DNA of 64,000 nucleotides, from the sequence record KJ019152.1. The stretch is one strand, 5' to 3'. The notes under the pieces were generated by a model. The model did no database searches and was not told where the DNA came from. It saw only the letters and a program-made list of their open reading frames with translations. This document shows positions 27,235-56,172 of this stretch, piece by piece. Position numbers and translations under genes: made by a program. Position 1 is the first letter of the stretch; each line of letters starts with the position of its first letter.

Positions 27235-27293
27235 TGTGACAGTCGACAAACTGGCACAGGGGGGTTGGCAAACCCCCTTTTTTGTGCTATAAT
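27235..27293 (+). promoter_or_regulatory. Cassette 1: dyad + terminator-like hairpin + sigma70 promoter
   Basis: TGTGACAGTC-GACA-AACTGGCACA; TTGGCA-17-TATAAT; GGGGGGTT/AACCCCC hairpin with T6. Confidence 0.9.
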
Positions 27294-27326
27294 AACAGGG
27301 TAGTCAAACAGAGAGGTTGGGTTCTA

Positions 27327-27677
27327 GTGGGTTTCCTGAGGTCTCTGTTTGCTACTGCCTTGGTGGGTATTGTTGGTGTGGTGTCTCCCGCCGAGGCAAG
27401 TGTGGGTGGTAATATGTCCCCAGTCGTAGAGGGTATGTGTATAAAGTACACACCCTTTGGCAATCTGCCATGTAAGATTAGAGTAGATGATAGTAAAGAA
27501 TTAGTGTATATTACAGACGGATATAACACTATGACATATACCAAGCACCCATTCATACCATATGCGTGGACAATGTATGTGAATGAACAAAGAATATCTA
27601 ACATGTTATGCTCCCTAGATAAGTATAACTTCTCTTGTTTTACTTCAATCAATTTTGTTCCTGATTATGAAAACTAA
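27327..27677 (+). CDS. Exported hypothetical protein
   Basis: GTG start after GAGAGG; signal peptide ending AEA; 4 Cys. Confidence 0.6.
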   Translation: MGFLRSLFATALVGIVGVVSPAEASVGGNMSPVVEGMCIKYTPFGNLPCKIRVDDSKELVYITDGYNTMTYTKHPFIPYAWTMYVNEQRISNMLCSLDKYNFSCFTSINFVPDYEN

Positions 27678-27999
27678 ATCATTGATGCTCACCAGTTTGA
27701 TGGTGGCAACGATAACCGCATCACCTGTCATGGCGTACGGATATCGCCAACCATACTATCAACAACCCCCAGTTGTTATTCAACAGCCAGCACCTGTTAT
27801 CATTCAACAACCAAGACCAAGTACCCTAGAAACTGTTTTGGGTATTGCAGTTATTGGTGCAGGTTTATACTGGAATAGTCCAGCATATCAGAACGATCAT
27901 GGATATTATAATGGAAATAGAAACCACCATCACAACCAATACCAAGGTGGCAAAACATATGTAATTTGTAATGATTACGGACGGAGGTATTACTGCTGA
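27667..27999 (+). CDS. Hypothetical protein with signal peptide and Gln/Pro repeats
   Basis: MKTKSLMLTSL..VMA; PVVIQQPAPVIIQQP. Confidence 0.6.
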   Translation: MKTKSLMLTSLMVATITASPVMAYGYRQPYYQQPPVVIQQPAPVIIQQPRPSTLETVLGIAVIGAGLYWNSPAYQNDHGYYNGNRNHHHNQYQGGKTYVICNDYGRRYYC

Positions 28000-28208
28000 T
28001 GGATTTTGTGGCATTTATGATTGATAAGGAAAACGCCTTATCACTGATACAATCACTTCACGAATCTGCCGATAAGTGTAGTAAAGATGGAAGACGAATT
28101 ATGGAAGCAAACTATACCAAACTAGCAGACATGATGATGGAACAATACCTAGTATCAGAGAGTATCCACAGGAAGAGAAAAAGAAATAACGGAGATTATA
28201 TCGGCTAA
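27999..28208 (+). CDS. Hypothetical protein
   Basis: Translationally coupled ORF (TGATG). Confidence 0.5.
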   Translation: MDFVAFMIDKENALSLIQSLHESADKCSKDGRRIMEANYTKLADMMMEQYLVSESIHRKRKRNNGDYIG

Positions 28209-28780
28209 TGATTGACTATCTTACCATCCCTAATAGCTTATCAGACAAACTTTGTGACGACATCATTCACAAGTTTGACAGTGATGATAGAGTTGATTAT
28301 GGTAAAATTAATATGGGAGATGTTGATACTGAGGTCAAAAGATGTAAAGAGTTGTTCATATCAATCCTAGATAACTGGCGAGATCTTGACAATCAGGTAT
28401 TCAATGCGTCGGTGAAAGGGTTAAGTCAATACCGTGAGTACATTAATGAGTTATACGATGCCGATTATCTTCTAGGATCAGATAATTCTGATCAAGGTTA
28501 CCGGGTAAAGAGATACGATATTGGTGAAGATTACTTTCATTGGCATCATGATCTACGTATAGATGAAAACCGTAGGATGAGATCAGTTGCCTTCATATGG
28601 TATCTAAATGATGTGGAAGAGGGTGGTGAAACAGAATTTAGTAATGGTCTAAAGATACGTCCAGAGAAAGGTAAACTACTTCTATTTCCATCTACATGGA
28701 ACAACGTACACAGAGGGAATACACCAATAAGTAATACGAAGTATGCTATTACTAGTTTCCTCTATTCCTCCTACGATTAG
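28208..28780 (+). CDS. 2OG-Fe(II) oxygenase
   Basis: FHWHHD; FIWYLNDVEEGGETEF; LLFPSTWNNVHRG..KY. Confidence 0.92.
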   Translation: MIDYLTIPNSLSDKLCDDIIHKFDSDDRVDYGKINMGDVDTEVKRCKELFISILDNWRDLDNQVFNASVKGLSQYREYINELYDADYLLGSDNSDQGYRVKRYDIGEDYFHWHHDLRIDENRRMRSVAFIWYLNDVEEGGETEFSNGLKIRPEKGKLLLFPSTWNNVHRGNTPISNTKYAITSFLYSSYD

Positions 28781-28809
28781 GTGATATATACTAAGTATGG
28801 GATACTTCA

Positions 28810-29364
28810 GTGGCAAAGGGTTATCGAATCAGGGGAGACTTTATTGCAAGTCTCATTAAACAACACGACTGTAAGATTGGTTATGAAATTGGGGTATCCA
28901 ATGGTGCAACTTTTGGTAAGATCTTAAAGAAATGTGATAATATTGAGTGGCATGGTGTAGATCCATGGGTTGTATGTTCCGAGTATGATAAACGCCCCAA
29001 TGGTAAGGGTAAGTGGAATCATGATGCTAACTATGAGAAAGTTCAGGAGATTGTTAGTAAGTATCCAAAGCGTGCATATACCCACCGCATGACCTCTGTA
29101 GAGGCTGCAAAGGAGGTAGAGGATAGAAGTATTGATATTATCTTTATAGACGGTCTGCACACCTACGAGGGGGTGAAGGAAGATCTAGAGGCTTGGGTGC
29201 CAAAGATCAAAATAGGTGGTATAATCTCTGGACATGACTATAAAGGTATGAAGAGACATGAGGGTGTGACTATACGAGTGAATGAAGTATTTGGTGAAGA
29301 AAACATTACTACTGGTCCAGATGTGACCTGGTGGTTATACAAAACGGAGGAACACGATGACTGA
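28810..29364 (+). CDS. SAM-dependent methyltransferase (Methyltransf_24-like)
   Basis: YEIGVSNG, GVDPW, IDIIFIDGLHTYEGV, GGIISGHDY. Confidence 0.85.
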   Translation: MAKGYRIRGDFIASLIKQHDCKIGYEIGVSNGATFGKILKKCDNIEWHGVDPWVVCSEYDKRPNGKGKWNHDANYEKVQEIVSKYPKRAYTHRMTSVEAAKEVEDRSIDIIFIDGLHTYEGVKEDLEAWVPKIKIGGIISGHDYKGMKRHEGVTIRVNEVFGEENITTGPDVTWWLYKTEEHDD

Positions 29365-30118
29365 GGGTTATGTTGTTATTGCACTTGGCGATAAGTATGT
29401 TCAACTCGCCAAGAACTTTGAAGATACACTAAGACAAAACGGTGACAATCGTCCTGTTCATGTTGTAACTGAAGACATGATTGATAAGGATAATGATAAG
29501 TATAGGGACTGTGATGTTCCCAACGAAAGGTATAACTGCTACCCCAAACTTCACTTCAATGAGTATGCGATATTTGATCATAGTATCCTAATCGATGCCG
29601 ATGTTCTGTGCGTAGGTGATACCCAACACGTTTGGGATATGTGTAAAGAACAGGAACAGTTTATTCTTCACCGTGGGTGGGGACAAGTTACTAAATGGAA
29701 TAGAGAACTACAGAAGAAAGTGTGGGACGTTCATGGGTTCGTACCTCCTCGCATTCACGGAGCTTTCTGTTATCTAAGGAAGGCAGATATCAATGAAGAC
29801 TTCTTTGAATTTATCCAAAATAATGTGTGGTTTCAGTATACTGAATGGTGTACGGAAGATGTCAAAGCAAGACATCACAGGTTAAGTAGATCAGACCAGG
29901 TGATATATGCTATTGGTTATGGTAAGTTTGATCTCATGCCCTGTCAGTTAATGGAAGTCCCTATTATGACTCATATATTGACAGCGGCACACGTTAATCC
30001 TCCATACGATAGAATCACTTTTAAGGATCAAATTGGACCCGATTTACAACATCCAGTGGCATTTGCCCATATCGAACAACTATTTCAGGAGAGCACCCCA
30101 GAAAGTTTTCTAAGGTGA
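29357..30118 (+). CDS. GT-A fold glycosyltransferase (GT8-like)
   Basis: YPKLH..FDHSILIDADVL (DxD); SDQVIY motif. Confidence 0.7.
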   Translation: MTEGYVVIALGDKYVQLAKNFEDTLRQNGDNRPVHVVTEDMIDKDNDKYRDCDVPNERYNCYPKLHFNEYAIFDHSILIDADVLCVGDTQHVWDMCKEQEQFILHRGWGQVTKWNRELQKKVWDVHGFVPPRIHGAFCYLRKADINEDFFEFIQNNVWFQYTEWCTEDVKARHHRLSRSDQVIYAIGYGKFDLMPCQLMEVPIMTHILTAAHVNPPYDRITFKDQIGPDLQHPVAFAHIEQLFQESTPESFLR

Positions 30119-30172
30119 CAGTCCACAAACTGGCACACAGGGCTTGGCAACCCTCCAAAAAGGTGCTATACT
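30114..30172 (+). promoter_or_regulatory. Cassette 2
   Basis: GGTGACAGTC-CACA-AACTGGCACA; TTGGCA-17-TATACT; upstream stop TGA inside dyad. Confidence 0.9.
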
Positions 30173-30198
30173 ATCCAAGTAACCAAAGGAAATGATTT

Positions 30199-30420
30199 AT
30201 GAAACCAGCAGAAATTCTCTACGAAATGCAATCCATTCGTAAAGTCTGGCATAATAATAATTTCGTTATCAGTCCCGAACTAAACCGTCGCTATTGTGAA
30301 CTTCTTAAACTCCGCCGTGAACGAGTTTCTCAATTCTATAAAGAGGGAAGGGTCGCTACAGGATCACAGACCCCCGACCTCAAAGCCCGAGAAGCAGCCA
30401 GACAAGCCGAGGTTGGTTGA
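30199..30420 (+). CDS. Hypothetical early protein
   Basis: AAGGA RBS after cassette 2. Confidence 0.7.
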   Translation: MKPAEILYEMQSIRKVWHNNNFVISPELNRRYCELLKLRRERVSQFYKEGRVATGSQTPDLKAREAARQAEVG

Positions 30421-30424
30421 GCCT

Positions 30425-30664
30425 ATGCAGGAACTTCTAGATACTTTCTATACAACCCCCTATGGTGATTTTGCCATTAGAAAGACTCGTTTCGGTGTTC
30501 ATACCTCATATGATCGAGAGGGAACCGATTTGGTGACAGGTTTAGAGTGGATTGACGTATTCACCACCACACCTTGTCACCTACAATGGGAGAAGGAGGG
30601 TTACAAACCCCCCGAAGGTACAGTTCAAGCAACCTATGATAGTGTAGTCTCTGGAAAACTCTAA
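30425..30664 (+). CDS. Hypothetical protein
   Basis: Start refined to ATG 30425; TRFGVHTSYD..VTGL, YDSVVSGKL. Confidence 0.6.
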   Translation: MQELLDTFYTTPYGDFAIRKTRFGVHTSYDREGTDLVTGLEWIDVFTTTPCHLQWEKEGYKPPEGTVQATYDSVVSGKL

Positions 30665-31011
30665 TGGAAGACCGAAAATCACAACTATACAGCATCATGT
30701 ATGATGCCATCAGTGAATTAACTGAGCACGAGAGTGCTGAGGATATCTTTGACAATATTGTAGAGTATTTTGCTCTACGTGTTGAAGAAGCCCGTACTGA
30801 GGTTGATACTTACACGGATATGTTAAACGTATTCCGCAAAGACAACCCAGTGAGAGACGTTCCTAGTGCAGATCCATACAAGAGAACTGAATGGGAACAC
30901 GCATTTGGTGATATGGATGACATCAATCAAACATACATGCCATCAAACCAACACATCTGGAACGAGTTTCTTAAGAATATAAAATTCACGGACAATCAAG
31001 ATACTAAATAA
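30664..31011 (+). CDS. Hypothetical protein
   Basis: Coupled ORF (TAATG). Confidence 0.6.
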   Translation: MEDRKSQLYSIMYDAISELTEHESAEDIFDNIVEYFALRVEEARTEVDTYTDMLNVFRKDNPVRDVPSADPYKRTEWEHAFGDMDDINQTYMPSNQHIWNEFLKNIKFTDNQDTK

Positions 31012-31031
31012 ACACTATCAGGAGAAAAGAG

Positions 31032-31229
31032 ATGACTACTGACCCAAACGATAAGTACGCTAAGTTCAAAGTACCATTTGGCACTAATGAACATCACGAA
31101 GATGATGAATGGGATCCCACAACTGAGGGTAAAATCTCTGATTGGCACAACCGACATCAAGATAAACTCTTAGATGAGTTTTGTGACACTCACCCAGGCG
31201 CACCCCAGTGTAAGGTGTTTGACGACTAA
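31032..31229 (+). CDS. CP12-like protein (C-terminal Cys pair)
   Basis: Ends DEFCDTHPGAPQCKVFDD, like the CP12 C-terminal C-x8-C motif; AGGAG RBS; CTAAATA at 31004. Confidence 0.55.
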   Translation: MTTDPNDKYAKFKVPFGTNEHHEDDEWDPTTEGKISDWHNRHQDKLLDEFCDTHPGAPQCKVFDD

Positions 31230-31231
31230 CA

Positions 31232-31277
31232 AAGTGGCACAAGACCACTTGACAGTACCACATTATTAGGTTACAGT
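31232..31277 (+). promoter_or_regulatory. Cassette 3 (right half-site only)
   Basis: AAGTGGCACA-7-TTGACA-17-TACAGT. Confidence 0.65.
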
Positions 31278-31281
31278 ACAT

Positions 31282-31470
31282 TTGTTCAAGAGGTTTCTCA
31301 TGACTACCGTTGTTGATTCAGAGGTTATCTTTGCTGACGCTTTCAGTGAAGATGGTATAGACTACGGAACTGGTTATTATGTAACTAAGTTCTATAGCAA
31401 TGGTATGACCGACCTATTTGGACCATACAATTTTGAGGAAGACGCCCTCAATCTTGCCACTGTTTATTGA
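31282..31470 (+). CDS. Hypothetical protein
   Basis: ORF track; probable start at ATG after AGAGG. Confidence 0.5.
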   Translation: MFKRFLMTTVVDSEVIFADAFSEDGIDYGTGYYVTKFYSNGMTDLFGPYNFEEDALNLATVY

Positions 31471-31645
31471 TTCCTTCCTTTTTATTATGACTTTTGACAC
31501 CTACGAAGACGAAAGTATCTTCACTATTCTCGGTATTGCCGAAGAAGGTGAAGAAGAAACAGAAAACCCCTATTCCACTGAGGATACTAAAACACTAAAA
31601 GAATATGGCTATTGATTTCTCGTTCATTCTAGGTTTAGTTTTCAT

Positions 31646-31975
31646 TTGGTTGGGACTAAATATCCGTATAGTGAGAGAGGTGGAATAGTGGATTTCAGGG
31701 TAACAGTAAGAACACACACCGGGGCAGTTAGAGTTGTCGAGGTGAGCAACATGCCGAACGAGGAGGCAGCCAGAGCGGAAGCTGTTGGTATGACTTTCGG
31801 TAGGGTTCTGCAGGTTGAGTGTTTAGATGAGATCCCAGAACAATCCAAACCTAAAAAGAAAAGAGGACCAGTTCAAGAGATTGAACGAGAACTTAGACCA
31901 GGTGAAACCGAAACAATTGTAACAGGTTACAATAGCAACCCGTTAGCAGTGTTCTTCACTTTAGATGTTTTTTAG
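31646..31975 (+). CDS. Hypothetical protein
   Basis: ORF track; GAGG RBS suggests a start near 31687. Confidence 0.5.
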   Translation: MVGTKYPYSERGGIVDFRVTVRTHTGAVRVVEVSNMPNEEAARAEAVGMTFGRVLQVECLDEIPEQSKPKKKRGPVQEIERELRPGETETIVTGYNSNPLAVFFTLDVF

Positions 31976-32007
31976 GGGTTGACACACCCCTTTTTTTGTG
32001 CTATACT
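31974..32007 (+). promoter_or_regulatory. Cassette 4 (hairpin promoter without dyad)
   Basis: AGGGGT-TGACAC-ACCCCT hairpin with T-run; TTGACA-17-TATACT. Confidence 0.85.
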
Positions 32008-32028
32008 TATACCAATCGCAGGAGATCA

Positions 32029-32295
32029 ATGGAAGAAAACATGTCGATTTCGACAGAACTTCTAACCAGCATAAACGACGCCATGTATGTTGCCACTAAC
32101 AACGCAGCTACTTACATGCACGGTGATAGAGGTGCTGACGCTATGTGTCTCCTAAACGAGTGGACTACAGAGGATGGTGAATGTTTACTCACACAATATG
32201 CAAAGGGTGAAGTATGTGAGCACATGGGAACTTTCATGTTTATCAACCTAGAAGAAGAAACATGGGGTGAGTTTATTATATCCGATGATGAGTAA
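32029..32295 (+). CDS. Hypothetical early protein
   Basis: AGGAG RBS; start refined. Confidence 0.65.
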   Translation: MEENMSISTELLTSINDAMYVATNNAATYMHGDRGADAMCLLNEWTTEDGECLLTQYAKGEVCEHMGTFMFINLEEETWGEFIISDDE

Positions 32296-32542
32296 ACTAT
32301 ATACTACAGACAATTATTCAGGTACAATGAACCTAACTGAACATCAAAAGATTCAACTCTCACAATTTATTCATGAGTCGTTCTCTACATTCTATGAGGA
32401 GGAACTAAAGTTTCAAGTAGAAACTCTAAAAGATGATGATAAGTTGGATTGGACTTATACAATCACACCAAGAGACTCAGGGGAGATTTATGATAAGGTT
32501 CAGGAATTATTCACACTGGAAAGGCGTGTGACAGTCGAATAA
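32288..32542 (+). CDS. Hypothetical protein ending in the cassette 5 dyad
   Basis: C-term RRVTVE encoded by the dyad. Confidence 0.55.
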   Translation: MSKLYTTDNYSGTMNLTEHQKIQLSQFIHESFSTFYEEELKFQVETLKDDDKLDWTYTITPRDSGEIYDKVQELFTLERRVTVE

Positions 32543-32586
32543 GTGACACAAGGGGGGTTGGCAAACCCCCTTTTTGCTGCCATAAT
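32527..32586 (+). promoter_or_regulatory. Cassette 5
   Basis: TGTGACAGTC-GAAT-AAGTGACACA; TTGGCA-17-CATAAT; G-run/C-run hairpin with T5. Confidence 0.9.
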
Positions 32587-32608
32587 ATACTCATACACAC
32601 AAAGACCC

Positions 32609-32737
32609 ATGAACGTCCCCAACTGGCAGAAGCACTCCAAGAAAGACCAGAAGGGTCGCGGAGTGAGCAAGGGTCAGATGAGAGCCCGCAAACAGGCTCT
32701 ACGTGCCCTGAAGGCAAAGCTCCTTGTGACAGTCTAG
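32609..32737 (+). CDS. Small basic hypothetical protein
   Basis: MNVPNWQKHSKKDQKG...; stop inside cassette 6 dyad. Confidence 0.65.
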   Translation: MNVPNWQKHSKKDQKGRGVSKGQMRARKQALRALKAKLLVTV

Positions 32738-32784
32738 GAAGTGGCACAAGCCCCCTAGGCAAGACCCCCAAACCCTGCTATACT
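32725..32784 (+). promoter_or_regulatory. Cassette 6
   Basis: TGTGACAGTC-TAGG-AAGTGGCACA; TAGGCA-17-TATACT. Confidence 0.9.
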
Positions 32785-32807
32785 AAACACATACAAAGGA
32801 AACCACC

Positions 32808-33218
32808 ATGGCTCGTCACTCTGAAGTTCTCATCCAAGGCACCGAGGTTCCCGGTCTTCGTATGATCGTAACCGTTCCAGTCGATCACACCTGGGCATCA
32901 GAAACCGCCCGTAGCATCTACGGATTCGGTGGCAACACCCAATACATCTGGCGGAAGTCTTGGGAGACTAACAAACCCGCTCCCCGTGGTGGTGGTGGTT
33001 CGTCCTCCTCCTCTGGCATGGGTCCTGGAGCTATCCTGATGGGGATGATTGGTCTTATCCTGGTTGCTGGTATTGGTTCCGCCTTCGAGGGTAACGACAC
33101 CCCCTCAGCTCCTTCCTATGACGCTCCCGCACCTGTTGAGAGGTCATACGTTCCACAGGCACCCGCAGCCTCCTATGACAATGGCCCTTGTCTCACCGCT
33201 AACTTCGAACCTTGTTAA
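32808..33218 (+). CDS. Membrane-anchored hypothetical protein
   Basis: GGGGSSSSS linker, then hydrophobic GAILMGMIGLILVAGIG. Confidence 0.65.
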   Translation: MARHSEVLIQGTEVPGLRMIVTVPVDHTWASETARSIYGFGGNTQYIWRKSWETNKPAPRGGGGSSSSSGMGPGAILMGMIGLILVAGIGSAFEGNDTPSAPSYDAPAPVERSYVPQAPAASYDNGPCLTANFEPC

Positions 33219-33219
33219 T

Positions 33220-33393
33220 ATGAATGACTTTCGCCCCCCGCATCACACCACTACTAAAGAAGAGTGGGAGTTTATTTTCCAAACACAGATACATAACTGC
33301 GCCCAACTAAAGAACACAGAACTCCAACGTTTTGTGTGTGTAGATAGTACGGGCAACAAAACTACCAAATATGTTATAGAATACAATGACTGA
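33220..33393 (+). CDS. Hypothetical protein
   Basis: Start refined to ATG 33220. Confidence 0.5.
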   Translation: MNDFRPPHHTTTKEEWEFIFQTQIHNCAQLKNTELQRFVCVDSTGNKTTKYVIEYND

Positions 33394-33676
33394 AAAAGAA
33401 GTAGAGCTACACTTTGGGAGTGAGTATGAGGCTGGCATTGACTATGGGGATAGTGATGATTCAGACATTTTAGACTACACCAAAGAAGTAAGTGTCACAC
33501 TAACCCGTTCAGATTGGAATTGGTTTGTTACACTGATGTCAGACTCCGTTAATAAGATGGAGGCTGCAGTTTCTGCACAAGGTATGGATGCTGAGTCCTT
33601 CCTTTCTATTGATGTTCTTCGCACTATTCGTAATGAAATCGCAACTCAGAGTGGGCTCACTCAATACATTGATTGA
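33386..33676 (+). CDS. Hypothetical protein
   Basis: Operon-like packing. Confidence 0.6.
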   Translation: MTEKEVELHFGSEYEAGIDYGDSDDSDILDYTKEVSVTLTRSDWNWFVTLMSDSVNKMEAAVSAQGMDAESFLSIDVLRTIRNEIATQSGLTQYID

Positions 33677-33677
33677 G

Positions 33678-33950
33678 ATGCCAGTAGTGGCACCTAAAGG
33701 TTATCACTATGAGGCAGTAGAACACAAACAAAACGTAGTGGCTATTTGGTTATGTGGAGGTCCAACATACCTCTACAAGATGGGAGAAACTGCTAGAACT
33801 ATTCACTCCTTCTATAATATTAAGAAGAAAACCTGGTATGCACCTATCAACTGCAAGAAGCCAGGTAAGGAGGTATCAGTGGATAAGATACGACCTTACA
33901 CATCAATGCAACTGAACTACAACCCTCTGGAGATGCTACTATATGGCTAA
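33678..33950 (+). CDS. Hypothetical cyanophage protein
   Basis: APKGYHYE..IWL..WYAPIN.KKPGKEV..RPYTSMQLN. Confidence 0.7.
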   Translation: MPVVAPKGYHYEAVEHKQNVVAIWLCGGPTYLYKMGETARTIHSFYNIKKKTWYAPINCKKPGKEVSVDKIRPYTSMQLNYNPLEMLLYG

Positions 33951-33985
33951 ATATATGTTATAATATCATAACATATATCACGAAT

Positions 33986-34207
33986 ATGAAGTCCAAAGAC
34001 CAATACAAGAAAGAGTTTCAATTCACACTGAATACATCTGATGATAAGATCGCGGAAGAGAATATTCTTCACGATTTCGCCAGAGAGGTTTCAGTTATTG
34101 ATGCTTTCCTACAAGGTGGGAAGGTATCACTAAAGGAGGCAAAACAGCGTATCAAAGATGTATACAAAGTGTGGAAGAACTCACTGAAAAACAACAACCA
34201 AATGTAA
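33986..34207 (+). CDS. Hypothetical protein
   Basis: GGKVS..EAKQRIK..YKVWK. Confidence 0.6.
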   Translation: MKSKDQYKKEFQFTLNTSDDKIAEENILHDFAREVSVIDAFLQGGKVSLKEAKQRIKDVYKVWKNSLKNNNQM

Positions 34208-49356: not shown

Positions 49357-49554
49357 ATGAAAGTCTCTCAGGAAGTTTTCAAGAGTTACATTCAGATACT
49401 GGATGAAAACACACAAACATCATGGGATATCCTAAATGTTTTGAATGATATTGTTAGAGGTGACTGGGATAACTCAGTCCAGTATTGTTTGGAAAATCCA
49501 TCAGGCGACCCTATGGATGATTTCAACTACGCAGGCAGTCGCCACCACTATTGA
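49357..49554 (+). CDS. Hypothetical early protein
   Basis: AAGGA RBS; ends DDFNYAGSRHHY. Confidence 0.7.
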   Translation: MKVSQEVFKSYIQILDENTQTSWDILNVLNDIVRGDWDNSVQYCLENPSGDPMDDFNYAGSRHHY

Positions 49555-49583
49555 TCACTAACTCACCACACTAACTAACAACT

Positions 49584-49865
49584 ATGACACGCACTCCAAT
49601 CACAGTTACCCTCAAGCGTAGCGAATGGGAATGTTATACAGACACTCCTGATACTATCATCGAAACTATCAACTCATACTTCTCTTATGTGTTATCAACT
49701 AAAGATAACGCGTTTGATGCACAGTCTGAGATATTCAAGTTTCTGAATATGTTTAGTGAGTTTGGGTTTATGGATAGTGAGTGCCTAGAATGTGCAACTA
49801 GAGTCATCAACAGATATTTCGATTCATACCTCTCCCGATGGAGCCAGATAGGTGTGACAGTCTAG
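49584..49865 (+). CDS. Hypothetical protein
   Basis: FSEFGFMDSE; stop in cassette 25 dyad. Confidence 0.65.
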   Translation: MTRTPITVTLKRSEWECYTDTPDTIIETINSYFSYVLSTKDNAFDAQSEIFKFLNMFSEFGFMDSECLECATRVINRYFDSYLSRWSQIGVTV

Positions 49866-49912
49866 GAACTGGCACAAGGGGGGTTGGCAAGACCCTCCAC
49901 ACCTGCTATACT
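49853..49912 (+). promoter_or_regulatory. Cassette 25
   Basis: TGTGACAGTC-TAGG-AACTGGCACA; TTGGCA-17-TATACT. Confidence 0.92.
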
Positions 49913-49937
49913 ATATTCATACCAAAGGGAACCACCC

Positions 49938-50528
49938 ATGACCATTTTTCTAGAAGACTACCTCCTCACCTCTTTCGCCAATAACCGTTCATCAAAGAGA
50001 ACTGATGATCTGAATGTGGCTCTTCTAAATGAGTTTCTAAATGAGTATCCTGAATACGCTGAACTAGAATGGAAGTTTGAAATACCTCTACCCGATGCCT
50101 ACGGTGCTACCTTCAAAGTAGATGCTGTGGGGTTTGAAGGTGATACACCTAAAATCGTTCTTCTCAATAAAAACGCTAACTCTAACTTCGCTCAGAATAT
50201 GAAAAACTACGCTAATACCAGCGTAGGTGAAGCCGCCCGAGTTCTGTTAGGCCCCATTGGTGAAGATGTAGAGAAAGTGTTCTTTATTACTGTTCATCCT
50301 AACTACTCACCTTTTTTCAAAAGTGATGGTTCTGTGAGTAGAATTGAAAATGTATGGAAGGCTAAAAAGAGAACCAATGTTGAATCTGTTCTGAAAAAGT
50401 TGTATGGTAGTAAAGTATCTACAATTACCTATTCATTTGATATCAACGAAATCAATGAGTTCTCTACTAAAACTCAGTTTCAGGATGGTATTACTATCTC
50501 TAACCTAAACTTTCATCAATGTGTATGA
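49938..50528 (+). CDS. Putative restriction endonuclease-like (PD-(D/E)xK-fold) protein
   Basis: FEIPL..FKVDAV..LLNKNANSNFAQN; directly upstream of a DNA MTase. Confidence 0.35.
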   Translation: MTIFLEDYLLTSFANNRSSKRTDDLNVALLNEFLNEYPEYAELEWKFEIPLPDAYGATFKVDAVGFEGDTPKIVLLNKNANSNFAQNMKNYANTSVGEAARVLLGPIGEDVEKVFFITVHPNYSPFFKSDGSVSRIENVWKAKKRTNVESVLKKLYGSKVSTITYSFDINEINEFSTKTQFQDGITISNLNFHQCV

Positions 50529-50540
50529 TATAATAAAGAT

Positions 50541-51311
50541 ATGAAGAATCAACTAATCAACGGCGAATGTTTAGAAGTCATGTCCACACTTCCTGATGGT
50601 TGTGTGGACATGGTGTTCTGCGATCTTCCTTATGGGACAACCCAAAATCATTGGGATGTTGTTATACCCTTTGATGATTTGTGGAAGCAATACAATAGAG
50701 TCGTAAAGGAAAATGGTGCTATTGTTCTCACAGCACAGTCGCCCTTCGACAAGGTGCTTGCCTGCTCTAATCTGAAAGAATTTCGTTATGAATGGATATG
50801 GGAAAAGAATAAGGCGACAGGACACTTAAACGCTAAAAAGATGCCAATGAAGGCACATGAGAATGTGTTAGTTTTCTATCGCAAACTACCCACATACAAT
50901 CCACAGAAAACAACAGGACATAAGCCTTTTGGTGCTGTTAAACCGAGAGATAATATCCCTGAGCCAGAGAAGAAGAGAAACTACAATCACCTCAGCAAAA
51001 CATATGGAAACGATGGCAATACCACTGATAGGTATCCTCGTTCTGTTCAGAAGTTTCCTGTTATTAACAATGATGACCCTCGTAAGTTTCATCCAACCCA
51101 GAAGCCAATTGGAATGATAGAATACTTTATAAAGACATATTCCAATGAGGGTGATATTGTGTTAGATAATTGTATGGGTTCAGGTTCTACCTGTATCGCT
51201 GCCAATAACCTAAACAGAGGATACATTGGAATTGAAAAAGATAAAGACATTTATCAGATGGCATCTGATTGGTTCAAAACAGAAACAACGCTAACACAGT
51301 TCATGTCATAA
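50541..51311 (+). CDS. DNA N6-adenine/N4-cytosine methyltransferase (beta class)
   Basis: DMVFCDLPYGTT (motif IV), HPTQKP, VLDNCMGSGST (motif I). Confidence 0.93.
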   Translation: MKNQLINGECLEVMSTLPDGCVDMVFCDLPYGTTQNHWDVVIPFDDLWKQYNRVVKENGAIVLTAQSPFDKVLACSNLKEFRYEWIWEKNKATGHLNAKKMPMKAHENVLVFYRKLPTYNPQKTTGHKPFGAVKPRDNIPEPEKKRNYNHLSKTYGNDGNTTDRYPRSVQKFPVINNDDPRKFHPTQKPIGMIEYFIKTYSNEGDIVLDNCMGSGSTCIAANNLNRGYIGIEKDKDIYQMASDWFKTETTLTQFMS

Positions 51312-51326
51312 TAGGAAGGATACCCA

Positions 51327-51386
51327 TGTGACAGTTGGAGAAGTGGCACAAGCCCCCTAGGCAAACCCCTCAGGGGGTGCTATACT
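51327..51386 (+). promoter_or_regulatory. Cassette 26
   Basis: TGTGACAGTT-GGAG-AAGTGGCACA; TAGGCA-17-TATACT. Confidence 0.92.
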
Positions 51387-51408
51387 ATATTCATACCAAA
51401 GGAACCAA

Positions 51409-51726
51409 ATGAATTTCAGAACACTAGCACTCACCACCACCCTGGCTCTCTCCACTGTCCTAGGTGGTTTGGCTCCTGAAGCTAAGTCAGCTGACTTTTG
51501 TGACAACATCCCCGGCAACTCGGGATACGTTTGTGTTACCATGGGTCTCTGGTTCGACTTGGTTGAGGCAGACATACCCGCCTTTGGTGGTAAAGAGTCA
51601 TTACACATCACCTGTGACGGTGGCTGGTCCTACCGTTCGAATGGCAACTGGAACAAAGACGCCGCTTCCCTTGTGGCTAAGGAATACTGTGAAGGTGCTG
51701 GCTGGAACAGCCACTCCGAGGTGTGA
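51409..51726 (+). CDS. Exported 4-Cys protein
   Basis: Signal peptide ending AKSA; similar to 46250; stop in cassette 27 dyad. Confidence 0.75.
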   Translation: MNFRTLALTTTLALSTVLGGLAPEAKSADFCDNIPGNSGYVCVTMGLWFDLVEADIPAFGGKESLHITCDGGWSYRSNGNWNKDAASLVAKEYCEGAGWNSHSEV

Positions 51727-51781
51727 CAGTTGAGGAAGTGGCACAAGCCCCCTAGGCAAACCCCTCCATACCTGCTATACT
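51722..51781 (+). promoter_or_regulatory. Cassette 27
   Basis: TGTGACAGTT-GAGG-AAGTGGCACA; TAGGCA-17-TATACT. Confidence 0.92.
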
Positions 51782-51803
51782 ATATTCATACCAAAGGAAA
51801 CCA

Positions 51804-52070
51804 ATGTTCCCACACCTCCACATCTCTGAATCAAACCTCGGACCTCACACCTCCATGTTTTTCAAAGTATCATCACAACCACAAGATGAGTGGCAGAATG
51901 GCATTTTCCATAACTCACCTTATGGCATCTTTCACCTTCATTCTGAGAAAGGTGTTTATAAGTTGGAACTATCTTCCTCAGGTTTGAATACTCCTAAGTT
52001 TCGCAAGTGTAAGTGTGAAGATGAACTTACCGCACTCACTAAGATTCGTCAGTGGATGGATAAGTTCTGA
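51804..52070 (+). CDS. Hypothetical cyanophage protein
   Basis: EWQNGIFHNSPYGIF..KLELSSSG..PKFRKCK. Confidence 0.75.
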   Translation: MFPHLHISESNLGPHTSMFFKVSSQPQDEWQNGIFHNSPYGIFHLHSEKGVYKLELSSSGLNTPKFRKCKCEDELTALTKIRQWMDKF

Positions 52071-52105
52071 TATTATCTAACACAAACCACTCACAACAAA
52101 CTATC

Positions 52106-52279
52106 ATGAACCGACTAGAACTACTGACCCAACGTGAACAACTGATGGAGAGGATTGACTCTATCTGTGATGAATTCTTTTATAAGAACTATAATGGAGA
52201 TACGTCAGAAGCAGATGAATTAGTTCGTATTCTATGTGATGCTGTTTGTGAAACCATAGACCCAGCGGGCATGGTGTGA
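52106..52279 (+). CDS. Hypothetical protein (57 aa, not in ORF track)
   Basis: MNRLELLTQREQLMERID..LCDAVCE; stop in cassette 28 dyad. Confidence 0.6.
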   Translation: MNRLELLTQREQLMERIDSICDEFFYKNYNGDTSEADELVRILCDAVCETIDPAGMV

Positions 52280-52333
52280 CAGTTGGACTAGTGGCACACG
52301 TTTCTCCGCAAACCCCTCCTCACCTGCTATACT
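52275..52333 (+). promoter_or_regulatory. Cassette 28 (TCCGCA subtype)
   Basis: TGTGACAGTT-GGAC-TAGTGGCACA-6-TCCGCA-17-TATACT. Confidence 0.88.
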
Positions 52334-52358
52334 ATATTCATACCAAAGGAAACCGACC

Positions 52359-52622
52359 ATGTTCCAAGTCTGTACCGAAGACGCTCTAGATCACCGCTAC
52401 ACAATTGATGAGTTTGAGACACTGGAAGAAGCCCAATCTTGTTATAACGAGTGTGTGAAGGTTGGAGCTGAGGGTTATGAGATTTCGGTTGAGTTAGAGG
52501 AAATCATTGGCGATCATGATGATTACGTTTCCATCGAGTTCACCGAGTGGTTTACACAAGAGAGTTGGGAGGAAGCACATCCATGGAATGATAAGGAAGG
52601 AGTTTGGGAGAACGTTGACTGA
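52359..52622 (+). CDS. Acidic hypothetical early protein
   Basis: AAGGA RBS. Confidence 0.7.
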   Translation: MFQVCTEDALDHRYTIDEFETLEEAQSCYNECVKVGAEGYEISVELEEIIGDHDDYVSIEFTEWFTQESWEEAHPWNDKEGVWENVD

Positions 52623-52623
52623 C

Positions 52624-52683
52624 TGTGACAGTTGGAGAAGTGGCACAAGCCCCCTAGGCAAACCCCTCCATACCTGCTATACT
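52624..52683 (+). promoter_or_regulatory. Cassette 29
   Basis: TGTGACAGTT-GGAG-AAGTGGCACA; TAGGCA-17-TATACT. Confidence 0.92.
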
Positions 52684-52710
52684 AAACACATACCAAACAA
52701 AGGAAACCAA

Positions 52711-53052
52711 ATGACCACCACCCAAACCAAAACCGAGTTCCTCACCGAGGCAATGATCGAACAGGTGAACAACCTCTGGAAGGTTTATAACGTGGAGTCA
52801 GGTCACACCATCACCCCACTTCTTAAGTATGAAGTGGCTAAGAAGTACATCAAGGTCTATCGTTTAGACGTTGTGAATGGTGAGATTCGTGACGGTCGTT
52901 CAGTGTTTATGTTTATCGATAAGGAGACTGGTGCAGTTCTGAAACCAGCCTCATGGAGAGCACCCGCTAAGGGTATCCGGTTCTACATTGAACAGTTGGC
53001 TGAGTCTCCTGAGCTCGTGGATCAGTATGGTAGTTTCCTCTACCGTCGCTGA
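52711..53052 (+). CDS. Hypothetical phage protein
   Basis: KKYIKVY..RSVFMFIDKETGAVLKPASWRAPAKGIRF; start refined. Confidence 0.75.
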   Translation: MTTTQTKTEFLTEAMIEQVNNLWKVYNVESGHTITPLLKYEVAKKYIKVYRLDVVNGEIRDGRSVFMFIDKETGAVLKPASWRAPAKGIRFYIEQLAESPELVDQYGSFLYRR

Positions 53053-53112
53053 TGTGACAGCCACCAAAGTGGCACAGGGGGGCTAGGCAGCTCCCCCTCT
53101 TTATGCTATACT
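53053..53112 (+). promoter_or_regulatory. Cassette 30
   Basis: TGTGACAGCC-ACCA-AAGTGGCACA; TAGGCA-17-TATACT. Confidence 0.88.
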
Positions 53113-53134
53113 ATATTCATACCAAAGGAACCCG

Positions 53135-54388
53135 ATGAGCTTCACCCTTCGCCCTCACCAAACAGAAGCACTTCAGGCGATGGCTGAGACCCGTCTTGGC
53201 ACGGTGTTAGTTCCAACTGGAGGAGGCAAAACACTGATAGCCATCATGGACGTTGTTCGTTCCCTAGAGACCGCAGGAACCCCTCAGACTATCGTTGTCG
53301 TCGCTCCCCGTATCCTTCTAGCCCAGCAACTCTGTAGTGAGTATATGGAGGTTCTGAGTGATAGGTTCGCCAACGTTATCCCCGCCCATATCCATTCAGG
53401 TCATACACCCCACTTCTCTACCACTAACATTCAGAAGATTCATCTCTTTGAGAAGATGATGGATACCGCCAACCTTCACCGTATATACTTCACCACATAC
53501 AACTCACTTCCACGTTTAGCAGAAGCAGGTGTAAGTGTCGATACTATTATGTTTGATGAGGCACATAACTCGACTCGTAATGACTTCTATCCCGCTACTA
53601 AGTATTTCTCACAAACCGCTAGTCGTTGTTACTACTTTACAGCAACTCCCCGCCACTCTGTAACATCCAAGAGACACGGAATGAACGAGTCTGATGTATA
53701 TGGTCAGGTCATCTACAATGTTCCTGCCCCTACACTTGTACAAGGTGGTTTCATCATCCCCCCACAGGTTCGTGTTAAAGAGATGGAGTTCGTAGCTAAA
53801 CATGAGCTCATCTCACAACGTGATACAAACCACCTCATCTCCTGTATTGATGACAACCACACGAGCAAAGTTCTAGTTTGTGCTAAGTCAGTCAAACAGA
53901 TCATGCGTATGTTTAGTGAGACCGATATCAGCCAACAACTTGATGATCGTGGTTTCTCCTATATGTACATCTCAGCTAAGACTGGTGGTGTTATCAATGG
54001 CAAGAAAGTATCACGTACTATGTTCTTCGATACTCTAAACGAGTGGGGTAAGGATAACAACAAGAAGTTCATTGTTCTTCATCATTCTATTCTCTCTGAG
54101 GGTATCAATGTAAGTGGTCTAGAGTCCGCTATCTTCTTACGTACTATGGATCATATCACTATCTCCCAAACGATTGGAAGAGTAATAAGATTACATAAGG
54201 ATGATGCCCAAGGTATGAGAGATGGTTCTATTCGCCCTGGTGATCTTAACTCCTACACCAAGTCGTTTGGTTTGTGTATTGTTCCAGTTTATTCTAAAAC
54301 ACAACAAACAGTTGCCAAGTCTCTTCAGGCAGTTGTTAATACCGTCTTTGTGGAAGGTGAAGCAGCAACCACAGTTGTGAGGCGTTAG
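53135..54388 (+). CDS. Superfamily 2 DEAH helicase (ResIII-like)
   Basis: LRPHQ Q-motif, PTGGGKT Walker A, DEAH, TATP, SEGINV, QTIGRVIR. Confidence 0.92.
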   Translation: MSFTLRPHQTEALQAMAETRLGTVLVPTGGGKTLIAIMDVVRSLETAGTPQTIVVVAPRILLAQQLCSEYMEVLSDRFANVIPAHIHSGHTPHFSTTNIQKIHLFEKMMDTANLHRIYFTTYNSLPRLAEAGVSVDTIMFDEAHNSTRNDFYPATKYFSQTASRCYYFTATPRHSVTSKRHGMNESDVYGQVIYNVPAPTLVQGGFIIPPQVRVKEMEFVAKHELISQRDTNHLISCIDDNHTSKVLVCAKSVKQIMRMFSETDISQQLDDRGFSYMYISAKTGGVINGKKVSRTMFFDTLNEWGKDNNKKFIVLHHSILSEGINVSGLESAIFLRTMDHITISQTIGRVIRLHKDDAQGMRDGSIRPGDLNSYTKSFGLCIVPVYSKTQQTVAKSLQAVVNTVFVEGEAATTVVRR

Positions 54389-54496
54389 TATGAATTATCA
54401 AAACCAAGCTCTTGTGATACTTCTAGGTCTAATGTTCATAGCTGGTATTAACGTACTTCACTATGAACAACAATGGCAATGTAGGATGCATCAAAC

Positions 54497-55207
54497 CTAT
54501 TGTTTTGTTTCTGAATAATACCATAGGTAACCCTTCCAACGCGAACCCCATTTGATAGAAGTACAAATACCCTTCCCACGATCCTCCTCATTAAAGGATC
54601 TCATCGCATCACTAATAGAATCAAAGACGGGAGTAACATGACCAGTCTTATGAACTCCATAGACTTGTTTCTTATTCTTAGCGTGTTTATGAATCCACCA
54701 TTTGTAACCATATGCCGAACCCTCTCTTGTGATACTTCTCCTGATATTTGATGGCCTACCATTCACATACTCAGCGGCAGCAACCCAACCATGAAAGGTT
54801 TTGATCTTACCCGTTTCCAAGCACCTACACTTGATGACGTTCTTATCATGTTTCTTAGGTTTCTTCTTTCGTTGATAACCCCATCTCCTATCCCCTTTAT
54901 GATATGACTCTTTATTATTCAGCTTCCTAGTCTTATGTTCTAACACCAAATTGTTATACTCAGGGTTATACTTATTCATCCAATATTCCACTCGTTCAGT
55001 AAGCTTATTCTCATTCACTTCTTCTAGTATACGTATAGTAAAGTCATCGGAGTTATAGTAAGATAAGGCATTACTCAGTGGAGTATTTTCCTCCTTATGA
55101 TTTTCCAATATCCCAGCCCAAACTTTATTCAGGGGAAGCGTATCATAACCGATGTATTTGTGAGAGGTTTGTCTATTCAAGATGATGTAGATGTTTGTGA
55201 TGCTCAC
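54497..55207 (-). CDS. GIY-YIG family protein with C-terminal NUMOD1-like repeats (Seg-like, probably inactive)
   Basis: NIYIILN..HKYIG and YN motifs; two C-terminal HTH-like repeats ending GYKW/GYLW; only - strand gene in the region. Confidence 0.7.
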   Translation of the reverse strand: MSITNIYIILNRQTSHKYIGYDTLPLNKVWAGILENHKEENTPLSNALSYYNSDDFTIRILEEVNENKLTERVEYWMNKYNPEYNNLVLEHKTRKLNNKESYHKGDRRWGYQRKKKPKKHDKNVIKCRCLETGKIKTFHGWVAAAEYVNGRPSNIRRSITREGSAYGYKWWIHKHAKNKKQVYGVHKTGHVTPVFDSISDAMRSFNEEDRGKGICTSIKWGSRWKGYLWYYSETKQ

Positions 55208-55587
55208 GGGAAATAGTCTCTATTCTGGTTGTATATATAAACATTATCTTTTTTTATCACATGTGTTTGTTTATCTCCCTTATGAATGTTATAATAGAAA
55301 GGAAGAGATAAAGATGAATAACCAATGGAATTACCTAGGTAAGAGTTATCTAATAGAAGGAACTAATGAATACAATAACCAATGTAATCACCTAAGAGAA
55401 GGTAACACTAATCCCCTATACAATACCCCTTATAATAGTATCATATAACGAGGTCTTTACAGCTCACTAAGCTCCTCCTAAACTCCACTGCCCGTTGCAA
55501 CCTAAGCCCGTTATAACACGGGACTTCGGAAAAGTCAAGGGATCTCCGAAAAACTTAATATTTCCGAGACACCCCAGACACCCACGG

Positions 55588-55633
55588 AACTGGCACAAAC
55601 CCCCTTGGCAAACCCCCCGAAATGGCATATACT
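55588..55633 (+). promoter_or_regulatory. Cassette 31 (right half-site)
   Basis: AACTGGCACA-7-TTGGCA-17-TATACT. Confidence 0.85.
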
Positions 55634-55658
55634 ATATTCATACACAAGGGAACCACCC

Positions 55659-55892
55659 ATGGAATTCATCCAAACTGACTACCCCGCTAACATGGCTCCC
55701 AATGTTATGGAGAGGAACTATGGTCGGGGTATCATCCTGACTCAGGTCAATGAGGATGGTGTCATTCCATTCTCAGTATTCAATTTCAAAAAAGAGGATT
55801 GGAACTGGGGAGCTGACTACTACATGACCGAGCATAACTTTTATACACTAGAAGAGGCAGAGGCGGTAGTGACTCAGCTCGTAGCCAGCTGA
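55659..55892 (+). CDS. Hypothetical early protein
   Basis: Start refined; stop in cassette 32 dyad. Confidence 0.65.
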   Translation: MEFIQTDYPANMAPNVMERNYGRGIILTQVNEDGVIPFSVFNFKKEDWNWGADYYMTEHNFYTLEEAEAVVTQLVAS

Positions 55893-55940
55893 ACCACTGT
55901 CACATGGGGGCTAGGCACAGCCCCCTCTATACCCTATACT
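55881..55940 (+). promoter_or_regulatory. Cassette 32
   Basis: GTAGCCAGCT-GAAC-CACTGTCACA; TAGGCA-17-TATACT. Confidence 0.82.
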
Positions 55941-55966
55941 ATATTCATACACAAGGGAACACCCCC

Positions 55967-56125
55967 ATGACCAAAGCAACTCAGAGACCTTCCACCCAGA
56001 GCCGTTACACCAGCCAGGTAGCCCGGGACCGTAAGGCGGCAGCACTCCAGAGGGCTGAGGAGCGTCGCCTCACTGGCTCATGTGGAGTGGATCAGGTGAA
56101 CCGCCTCTACACTGTGACACTCTGA
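55967..56125 (+). CDS. Small basic early protein
   Basis: Start refined; stop in cassette 33 dyad. Confidence 0.6.
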   Translation: MTKATQRPSTQSRYTSQVARDRKAAALQRAEERRLTGSCGVDQVNRLYTVTL

Positions 56126-56172
56126 TAACTGGCACACAGGGGGTTGACAATACACCCCCATGGCTCTATACT
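56113..56172 (+). promoter_or_regulatory. Cassette 33
   Basis: TGTGACACTC-TGAT-AACTGGCACA; TTGACA-17-TATACT. Confidence 0.9.

Follow-up and report, generated by a model that had tools for sequence, protein, structure and literature searches.

The window analysed here, a stretch of 64,000 nucleotides, comprises bases 1–64000 of the genome of Synechococcus phage ACG-2014f isolate Syn7803C25 (KJ019152.1; 221,396 bp; Kyanoviridae, genus Atlauavirus), and the coordinates of the window and of the record are identical. Between a tail-fibre-like gene on the left (end 27227) and the baseplate gp25/gp6 block on the right (start 59478), the GenBank annotation lists 82 small open reading frames (ORFs) on the + strand, nearly all of them "hypothetical", and one homing-endonuclease-like gene on the minus strand. 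The + strand ORFs are preceded, singly or in groups, by repeated promoter cassettes, most of which carry a 24-bp dyad upstream of the promoter, and indels and replacements between this phage and its close relatives have their breakpoints in these cassettes beyond chance expectation.

A search for direct repeats yields, in the array region, families of 77–105 nt with 13–23 copies. A nhmmer profile built from 23 seed copies and run against the whole window gives exactly 33 matches on the + strand (E-values from 4e-5 to 1e-27), spanning 27232–56189, in agreement with the by-eye count of a preliminary description; elsewhere in the window no cassette is found on the + strand, and the minus strand shows only weak echoes of the palindromic part. 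The remaining 157 kb of the genome contain three further cassettes (36 in total), situated directly upstream of cobS, ORF216, and psbA, which suggests that these genes share an early-type promoter. The other 33 of the 36 copies sit in 29 kb of small ORFs, most of which have no Pfam family or only a DUF.

The Pfam scan of the 83 array proteins finds methylases, a dCMP deaminase, a 2OG-Fe(II) oxygenase, a helicase, weak CP12 and NUMOD1 matches, and DUFs. Integrase, recombinase, and transposase families are not found among these proteins, nor is a DNA-binding regulator, and Rfam gives no family match anywhere in the window. Recombination genes annotated in the genome are those of UvsX, UvsY, gp46, and gp47.

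The cassette consists, in this order, of the dyad TGTGMCA-N10-TGKCACA, a linker, a weak −35 box (TTGGCA, TAGGCA, TTGACA, TAGACA, TTCGCA, or YCCGCA), a spacer, an extended −10 box (TGnTATACT), a conserved CATACCAAAGGAACC-like leader with an AGGA-type ribosome site, and ATG. The spacer between the −35 and −10 boxes is 17 nt long in all 33 copies; the −10 box is TATACT in 25 of the 33, mostly with TGn in front; and the annotated ATG lies 22–30 nt past the −10 box in 29 of the 33. Anchoring on the promoter thus bears out the unit layout of the preliminary description, with its spacer of exactly 17 bp. Its linker of 7 or 6 nt also stands, with the shorter form now assigned to six copies, not four; small + strand ORFs do follow the cassettes, their number being 1–13 by annotation, not 1–10, and 16 cassettes have a single gene. 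The upstream ORF stops within the dyad, or a few bases away from it, in approximately 26 copies, so that the cassette occupies the entire intergenic gap.

Per-column information is high in both dyad arms, the last bases of the −35 box, the TGCTATACT block, and the leader; the linker is variable, as are the spacers of the dyad and of the promoter. Within the array 23 dyads are exact, 26 have at most one mismatch, and 29 at most two, which agrees with the earlier tally of 28 copies with both arms, four with the right arm only, and one with none (the dyad-less copy at 31975). The 221-kb genome contains 25 exact dyads, every one of them promoter-linked, against none in whole-genome shuffles (0–1 mismatch). 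The linker type (G-run or C-run) and the leader type (ATATTC or AAACAC) occur in all four pairings, hence the cassettes are themselves mosaics. A general scan for the sigma-70 consensus is too permissive to show enrichment (65 sites vs. 45.7 expected, and 27 vs. 29.7).

A hairpin of a G-run and a C-run around the −35 box is present in 14 of the 33 copies (at most −8.9 kcal/mol). Five of the 14 have a run of at least four T and score as intrinsic-terminator-like; these would additionally terminate upstream transcription. The other 19 copies have no such hairpin, and 13 of them show C-runs on either side of the −35 box or a short CCCCTCAGGGGG hairpin in the spacer. Cassettes 9 and 10, both with an atypical −10 box, are followed by a separate short leader hairpin (37637–37680 and 38806–38840) whose loop is of the GNRA type (GTGGAGGG-GAGA-CCCACCAC), and a third, partial copy of this hairpin is seen at approximately 39040–39060. 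This hairpin has no Rfam match; similar gagtggagggagcaagtcccaccc leaders follow dyads in three distant IMG/VR contigs.

Used as a query against IMG/VR, ORF71, the DUF6267 protein encoded in the array, gives 79 loci whose copy of the protein is only 40–51% identical, and these loci contain 97 non-redundant dyads, compared with two in shuffles. Positions 5/20 of the 97 dyads are occupied by A/G (43), C/G (38), A/T (10), and C/T (6), the commonest state being the non-pairing A/G; complementary pairs number 48, vs. 45.5 expected under independence by our own arithmetic. At positions 8/17 complementary pairs are depleted (21 vs. 38 expected, calculated likewise). No covariation between the arms is seen in these 97 dyads, and, as the variable positions show no excess of pairing, it is the sequence of the dyad that is conserved, not its pairing. 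The folding energy of the dyad as RNA is modest, at about −4 to −8 kcal/mol, shuffled sequences reaching about −2 to −3 (mean z about −1.9); despite this energy, the covariation counts lead us to reject a hairpin signal. The promoter-proximal arm (TGGCACA) is the better conserved, and several copies retain the right arm alone.

Pooling the DUF6267 loci with a scan of IMG/VR for the dyad pattern (at least 120 stretches) gives at least 489 non-redundant dyads in at least 198 loci. Among the matches listed, the distance from the dyad to the start of a −10 hexamer (at least five of six bases) has a sharp maximum at 29 nt (200 dyads) and 30 nt (90 dyads), together 290 of 489, against a background of 0–9 per position; the −35 region of the listed dyads is often not conserved. 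The dyad thereby spans about −42 to −65 with its center near −54, and such a fixed distance is expected of a site acting together with RNA polymerase. The dyad-bearing contigs match Synechococcus, Prochlorococcus, and cyanophage records (S-IOM18, S-RIM2, S-RIM50, S-SRM01, ACG-2014f). The "added dyad" of the preliminary description is not peculiar to the array: hundreds of cyanomyovirus promoters have it, with its distance to the −10 box fixed, including the lone promoters of psbA and cobS in this genome.

In Syn9, the variant TGTGACA-N10-TGTCCAC lies upstream of the small ORFs gp63 and gp68 and of the helicase gene gp75, with a −10 box approximately 29 nt downstream, and an exact dyad at 48558, next to gp73, has its −10 box at about the same distance (~29 nt). 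S-CAM7 (genus Mazuvirus) has both variants of the dyad, in an array at the equivalent genomic position. With the strict pattern, S-CAM7 gives one site only, and the first 50 kb of Syn9 likewise contain a single exact site; the right-arm variant TGTCCAC, which prevails in both phages, was recognized by reading upstream regions.

One genome of each of 185,579 bacterial and archaeal species was scanned with the strict dyad plus −10 box, resulting in 31 stretches, compared with approximately 17 expected by chance (our own estimate); none of these is in a chromosome of marine Synechococcus or Prochlorococcus, although weaker host sites could escape the strict consensus. Judged by its sequence context, the dyad is a promoter element, phage-restricted at the scan stringency used. 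Multi-dyad loci among the cellular matches look like mis-binned phage contigs. Contigs of this kind, probably phage DNA, include a 194-kb contig of a "Synechococcus MAG" (metagenome-assembled genome; JBJBBP010000001.1), a 188-kb contig in the assembly of a Nonlabens xiamenensis isolate (NZ_RMVE01000006.1), a 3.3-kb "Nanopelagicaceae" contig with seven dyads, and a "Flavobacteriales TMED113" contig.

Several known sites were considered for the dyad and rejected. The TGGCAC motif recalls sigma-54, but its spacing to any TTGC is unsuitable; cyanobacteria, moreover, are not known to have sigma-54. The sites of CRP, NtcA, LexA, LysR-type regulators, and HLR1 are, as read from the sequence, unsuitable in spacing or orientation. 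In the literature searched, neither the dyad sequence nor an account of the early motif of Syn9 turned up in usable form.

The collection of related phages comprises 45 records at 92–100% identity over 39–47 kb of the window, differing in the number of alignment pieces. We compared eight of these 45 relatives with positions 25001–60500 of the window by chained blastn alignments, counting events of at least 50 bp, which gives 17 distinct indels or replacements in the array. All window breakpoints are in cassettes for 10 of the 17 events, one end is in a cassette for three, and no end for four. This is the comparison that the preliminary description had proposed for its idea of shuffling by early promoter stem-loop (PeSL) cassettes, and its outcome supports that part of the interpretation. 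The cassettes make up 12.5% of the array length, and a uniform null yields a mean of 0.57 events with all breakpoints in cassettes, with none of 20,000 trials reaching 10 (P < 5e-5). Under a null restricted to gene junctions, 33 of 83 of which have a cassette, 3.9 such events are expected vs. the 10 observed (P about 0.001); counted per breakpoint, 19 of 29 are in cassettes (P = 0.004, same null). All 17 events are in the cassette-rich part of the array (35.9–56.25 kb; 20.4 kb, 27 cassettes), and none in the cassette-poor part (27.2–35.9 kb; 8.7 kb, six cassettes).

In cassette-to-cassette events the flanking alignments overlap by 42–84 nt, at most the extent of the cassette that they share; after a deletion exactly one cassette remains, and insertions in relatives are flanked by a duplicated cassette. 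The cassette of KJ019148 that survives the 2.76-kb deletion is visibly a hybrid, with the dyad of the upstream copy and the promoter and leader of the downstream one. The breakpoint pattern is a direct observation; the flank overlaps and the hybrid cassette point to homologous recombination. Events that are not fully bounded by cassettes likewise use, to judge from their junctions, repeated regulatory DNA: the ORF51 junctions share a TGA located in the left dyad arm, and the loss of ORF60 in four relatives is delimited by two copies of the leader hairpin.

One of the three events with a single end in a cassette is the precise presence or absence of cassette 15 (42027–42133), so that gain or loss can affect a lone cassette between two coupled genes. 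At 38.6, 52.1, and approximately 58.3 kb in window coordinates, relatives have additional endonuclease genes of the HNH or GIY-YIG type, and these insertions are not bounded by cassettes.

Identity to each relative shifts between inter-cassette segments, as does the identity of the closest relative, and some cassette-bounded genes have no megablast (high-identity) match in most relatives. Here, ORF99 (52359–52622, between cassettes 28 and 29) has an ORF of the same length annotated at its place in the six of eight relatives that have no megablast match, which points to a divergent allele swapped between cassettes. At a larger distance, S-CAM7 has homologues of 36 of the 82 array proteins in the equivalent region, collinear in the cassette-poor block and scattered in the cassette-rich part only; ORF94 and ORF95, adjacent here, are 14 kb apart in S-CAM7, and the helicase gene is at the opposite end of the array.

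Arrays of PeSLs are established in T4-type phages of enterobacteria and vibrios (RB49/phi1, T4/PST, KVP40/nt-1) and are proposed to work by exchange of self-expressed units through homologous recombination (Arbiol 2010, PMC2839356; Comeau 2014, PMC4122927). In the open literature searched, PeSLs and cyanophages are mentioned together in two papers only; of these, the one that looked for PeSLs, in cyanophage S-PM2, reported no dense array and dismissed the mechanism there. By its promoter, its location, and its breakpoints, the present array appears PeSL-like: a repeated sigma-70-like promoter (recognized here from sequence alone) with N17, a ribosome site, and ATG fills the gaps between the genes of a hyperplastic region; a subset of copies has a GGGG...CCCC stem-loop; and indels and replacements between close relatives are bounded by elements, each unit being a putative self-expressed ORFan module. 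It differs from PeSLs in that the G/C stem-loop is present in only 14 of 33 copies and encloses the −35 box instead of preceding it; in that upstream conservation is highest in a 24-bp dyad whose arms do not covary, a feature that the PeSL descriptions do not mention (PMC2839356, PMC4122927); and in its cyanobacterial host.

Other systems share single features with the array. Repeated intergenic sequence classes containing promoters are found in halovirus HF2, an archaeal virus with unrelated sequence (PMC8707807). Activator-dependent extended −10 promoters (NtcA/CRP) and T4 early promoters with UP elements likewise combine a weak or variable −35 box and a TGn −10 box with an upstream element at a fixed distance. 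However, CRP/FNR (TGTGA-N6-TCACA) and NtcA (GTA-N8-TAC) sites are located at −41.5 or −61.5 with half-sites 6 or 8 nt apart, whereas the arms of the dyad are 10 nt apart (TGTG to CACA N16), 17 bp center to center, with the dyad center near −54; and UP elements are A/T-rich, whereas the dyad contains G/C. Integrons resemble the array in the serial arrangement of small single-gene units with imperfect palindromes between them and in unit-wise gain and loss, but here Pfam finds no integrase among the 83 proteins, a promoter belongs to each unit, conservation of the palindrome concerns its sequence and not its structure, and there is no fixed crossover point.

Doron et al. reportedly described in 2016 a novel, non-T4 element that controls the early genes of Syn9 and P-TIM40 and that is both abundant and conserved across the T4-like cyanophages. 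Probably the dyad is this element. Like it, the dyad is conserved across cyanomyovirus-like loci, lies upstream of genes, and has variants in Syn9 and S-CAM7, while the role of a recombination substrate and the density of 33 copies in one region are apparently outside that description.

We consider it quite probable that the 33 repeats are early-type promoters with the dyad as a phage-specific promoter element, and that their near-identity makes them recombination substrates in a PeSL-like manner. The dyad is most likely the binding site of a protein working with the host RNA polymerase. General recombination of the phage, which encodes UvsX, UvsY, gp46, and gp47, would cross over between cassettes, because these share 60–90 nt of near-identity in direct orientation; the enzymology is our inference. 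Such crossovers would delete, insert, or swap whole promoter-plus-gene units and leave the neighbors intact, and the plasticity of the region would then be a by-product of repeated regulatory DNA, with no dedicated capture machine. A bolder version is put forward only tentatively: the dyad and the extended −10 box may form a distinct, phage-restricted promoter class of Kyanoviridae, read by a virion-delivered factor or by a host protein without a comparable chromosomal regulon, and the same 60–90 nt unit may serve as portable homology for integrase-free gene shuffling in wild cyanophages.

Several points weigh against this interpretation. Four of the 17 events are unrelated to cassettes, two of them being insertions of HNH endonucleases, and three events proceed via microhomology or another repeat. 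Selection for intact genes alone would drive surviving breakpoints into intergenic DNA, which is mostly cassette here; the junction-restricted null meets this survivorship only roughly, and the events are not fully independent. The comparison covers eight of the 45 relatives, always against one reference genome, so that each event may be a gain or a loss. Finally, the early timing and the protein site at the dyad are both inferred from the sequence, and the link to the early element of Syn9 is a probable one.

Survivorship taken to its end would make the repeats promoters and nothing else, with the match of breakpoints to cassettes due to selection and no mechanistic role for cassette homology. 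Cassettes at 33 of approximately 83 gene junctions would indeed attract viable breakpoints often, and the four cassette-independent events fit this, but we find it improbable, as the excess persists under the junction-restricted null (P about 0.001–0.004), deletions leave one cassette, flanks overlap by 42–84 nt, one cassette is a hybrid, insertions are surrounded by a duplicated cassette, and the approximately 29 cassette-less junctions of 27.2–35.9 kb have no events. Equally doubtful is an action of the dyad as RNA, i.e., as a 3′ stem-loop of the upstream transcript (a terminator, stabilizer, or processing site) corresponding to the "SL" of a classical PeSL. Upstream ORFs do terminate inside the dyad, its folding energy is somewhat below that of shuffles, and a stem-loop beside the promoter belongs to the definition of PeSLs; however, compensatory changes are absent, with A/G the commonest state at 5/20 and pairs depleted at 8/17, several copies have retained only the right arm, the constant distance to the −10 box suggests a function downstream and not upstream, and in the five copies with a T-run a separate G/C hairpin would already act as a terminator.

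The dyad could also be an operator bound by a transcription factor of the host, with the phage hijacking the regulon of that factor as with NtcA or PhoB boxes. Early transcription requires a pre-existing factor, the use of host NtcA and PhoB sites by cyanophages is known, and the fixed phasing suits an activator. Still, such an operator is unlikely given the near-chance result of the species scan, with none in marine picocyanobacterial chromosomes (where the strict consensus could miss weaker sites), and a spacing that reads unlike CRP/NtcA-type sites. The preliminary description had suggested a self-contained gene-capture platform. In its integron-like form, with the dyad as an attC-like site at which a dedicated site-specific recombinase captures and excises cassettes, we regard this as highly improbable, even though gains and losses are bounded by cassettes, each upstream ORF has the dyad, an imperfect palindrome, at its 3′ end, and one crossover maps to the right arm of the dyad or the linker. 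Any dedicated capture system seems unlikely because the Pfam scan of the 83 array proteins gives no integrase, recombinase, or transposase; because crossovers are not at one point, but at the dyad arm, the −10/leader region, left-arm microhomology, and the leader repeat; because the dyad is promoter-like, being conserved in sequence rather than pairing and lying at 29–30 nt from the −10 box among the listed IMG/VR dyads; and because it also occurs at the isolated psbA and cobS promoters. Furthermore, every unit has a promoter of its own, unlike integron cassettes.

The T4-like cyanophages are among the most abundant viruses of the ocean, and host range and counter-defence are presumed to depend on their variable small genes. 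The array bears on the turnover of such genes and on the switch to early transcription without the T4 proteins Alt, Mod, AsiA, and MotA, and it offers a mechanism at the level of sequence by which genes would be gained, lost, and replaced unit by unit in a natural population represented by 45 sequenced isolates. We regard the finding on recombination as solid, and by analogy with PeSLs it would be expected; the dyad as an element has probably been published already, and if it is the one described for Syn9, the new content is the PeSL-like role in recombination. With a sharply defined cis element (the dyad, a gap of 29–30 nt, and an extended −10 box) and hundreds of natural variants, the search for the early factor is directly testable, and the double role of the dyad, as promoter element and as recombination homology, is now easy to address by experiment together with its factor.

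Table 1. Cassettes, cassette-bounded events in relatives, and related features (positions in KJ019152.1; −35 and −10 boxes separated by a slash).
Feature	Position	Strand	Particulars
Whole array	27232..56189	+	33 cassettes driving 82 annotated small ORFs (profile search, GenBank annotation)
Cassette 1	27232..27295	+	dyad; G7/C5 hairpin + T6 (terminator-like) enclosing −35; TTGGCA/TATAAT; 6 genes
Cassette 2	30110..30191	+	dyad; TTGGCA/TATACT; 4 genes
Cassette 3	31218..31284	+	left arm degenerate; TTGACA/TACAGT; 3 genes
Cassette 4	31975..32022	+	no dyad; hairpin + T7; TTGACA/TATACT; 2 genes
Cassette 5	32524..32612	+	dyad; hairpin + T5; TTGGCA/CATAAT; 1 gene
Cassette 6	32721..32808	+	dyad; TAGGCA/TATACT; 13 genes, the cassette-poor block collinear with S-CAM7
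Cassette 7	36302..36393	+	dyad; hairpin + T7; TAGGCA/CATAAT; site of 3.5-kb replacement and 559-nt insertion in relatives
Cassette 8	36754..36844	+	dyad, left arm TATGCCA; G/C hairpin; TAGGCA/TACACT; 4 genes
Cassette 9	37572..37662	+	dyad; TTGGCA/TATCTT; followed by leader hairpin; 3 genes
Cassette 10	38743..38840	+	perfect-arm dyad; TTGGCA/TATTGT; leader hairpin GTGGAGGG-GAGA-CCCACCAC; 3 genes
Cassette 11	39529..39620	+	dyad; TTGGCA/TATACT; left end of 2.76-kb cassette-to-cassette deletion in KJ019148
Cassette 12	39854..39928	+	right arm only; G/C hairpin; TTGGCA/TATACT
Cassette 13	40188..40271	+	dyad; 6-nt linker; CCCGCA/TATACT; left end of ORF65 deletion
Cassette 14	40444..40537	+	dyad; TAGGCA/TATACT; right end of ORF65 deletion; 4 genes
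Cassette 15	42039..42131	+	dyad; hairpin + T6; TTCGCA/TATACT; whole cassette absent in 5 relatives, where ORF69/ORF70 overlap at ATGA
Cassette 16	42363..42451	+	perfect dyad; TAGGCA/TATACT; drives DUF6267 gene; right end of 2.76-kb deletion
Cassette 17	43509..43601	+	dyad; TAGACA/TATACT; 9 genes
Cassette 18	45718..45806	+	left arm TAGGACA; G/C hairpin; TAGGCA/TATACT
Cassette 19	45945..46024	+	right arm only; TTGGCA/TATACT
Cassette 20	46162..46249	+	dyad; TAGGCA/TATACT; 2 genes
Cassette 21	46716..46805	+	dyad; 6-nt linker; TCCGCA/TATACT
Cassette 22	47020..47108	+	dyad; G/C hairpin; TTGGCA/TATACT; 3 genes
Cassette 23	48571..48661	+	dyad; 6-nt linker; CCCGCA/TATACT; lost along with ORF90 in 6 relatives
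Cassette 24	49267..49359	+	dyad; TAGGCA/TATACT; 2 genes
Cassette 25	49848..49940	+	dyad; G/C hairpin; TTGGCA/TATACT; left end of 1.39-kb deletion (ORF94 + Dam) and of 1.78-kb replacement
Cassette 26	51322..51413	+	dyad; TAGGCA/TATACT; right end of 1.39-kb deletion
Cassette 27	51718..51808	+	dyad; TAGGCA/TATACT; right end of 1.78-kb replacement
Cassette 28	52270..52360	+	dyad; 6-nt linker; TCCGCA/TATACT; next gene without megablast match in 6/8 relatives
Cassette 29	52621..52707	+	dyad; TAGGCA/TATACT; 304-nt and 880-nt cassette-flanked insertions in relatives
Cassette 30	53048..53140	+	dyad; G/C hairpin; TAGGCA/TATACT; drives helicase gene
Cassette 31	55577..55661	+	left arm degenerate; TTGGCA/TATACT; left end of ORF103 deletion
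Cassette 32	55884..55965	+	left arm degenerate; G/C hairpin; TAGGCA/TATACT; right end of ORF103 deletion
Cassette 33	56111..56189	+	dyad; TTGACA/TATACT; ~450–510-nt insertions start here in 6 relatives
Extra terminator-like hairpin	38056..38117	+	GGAGGG..CCCTCC + T6, then TTGCCA-N17-TATAAT; no dyad; outside the 33
Cassette upstream of cobS	114483–114571		outside array; genome search
Cassette upstream of ORF216	156410–156471		outside array; genome search
Cassette upstream of psbA	171124–171203		outside array; genome search
3.5-kb replacement	36368–36771		cassette-bounded; brings methyltransferase + helicase
559-nt insertion	36.3 kb		cassette-bounded
2.76-kb deletion	39602–42363		cassette-bounded; KJ019148
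ORF65 deletion	40270–40448		cassette-bounded
1.39-kb deletion	49934–51326		cassette-bounded; ORF94 + Dam
1.78-kb replacement	49937–51715		cassette-bounded
304-nt insertion	52.6 kb		cassette-bounded
880-nt insertion	52.6 kb		cassette-bounded; event separate from the 304-nt insertion
ORF103 deletion	55661–55930		cassette-bounded
Insertions	start 56136		cassette-bounded

Among the genes of the array, the weak CP12-domain match (E = 2.7e-4) is seen in one of 73 small array proteins; CP12 is a known auxiliary gene of cyanophages. The sole minus-strand gene (54497–55207), annotated as "cox1-i7 protein" and homing-endonuclease-like, is probably the source of the weak NUMOD1 match, and it is adjoined by approximately 370 nt without annotation (55208–55576).

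Outside the array, the largest repeat families of the window, with a 9-nt period, are long Gly-X-Y (collagen-like) repeats in a structural gene (13640–14668 and 15372–15616). Outside the window, at KJ019152.1 139000–139692, a gene annotated as a sigma-70-family RpoD subunit (230 aa) lies among methylase and cytidylyltransferase genes.

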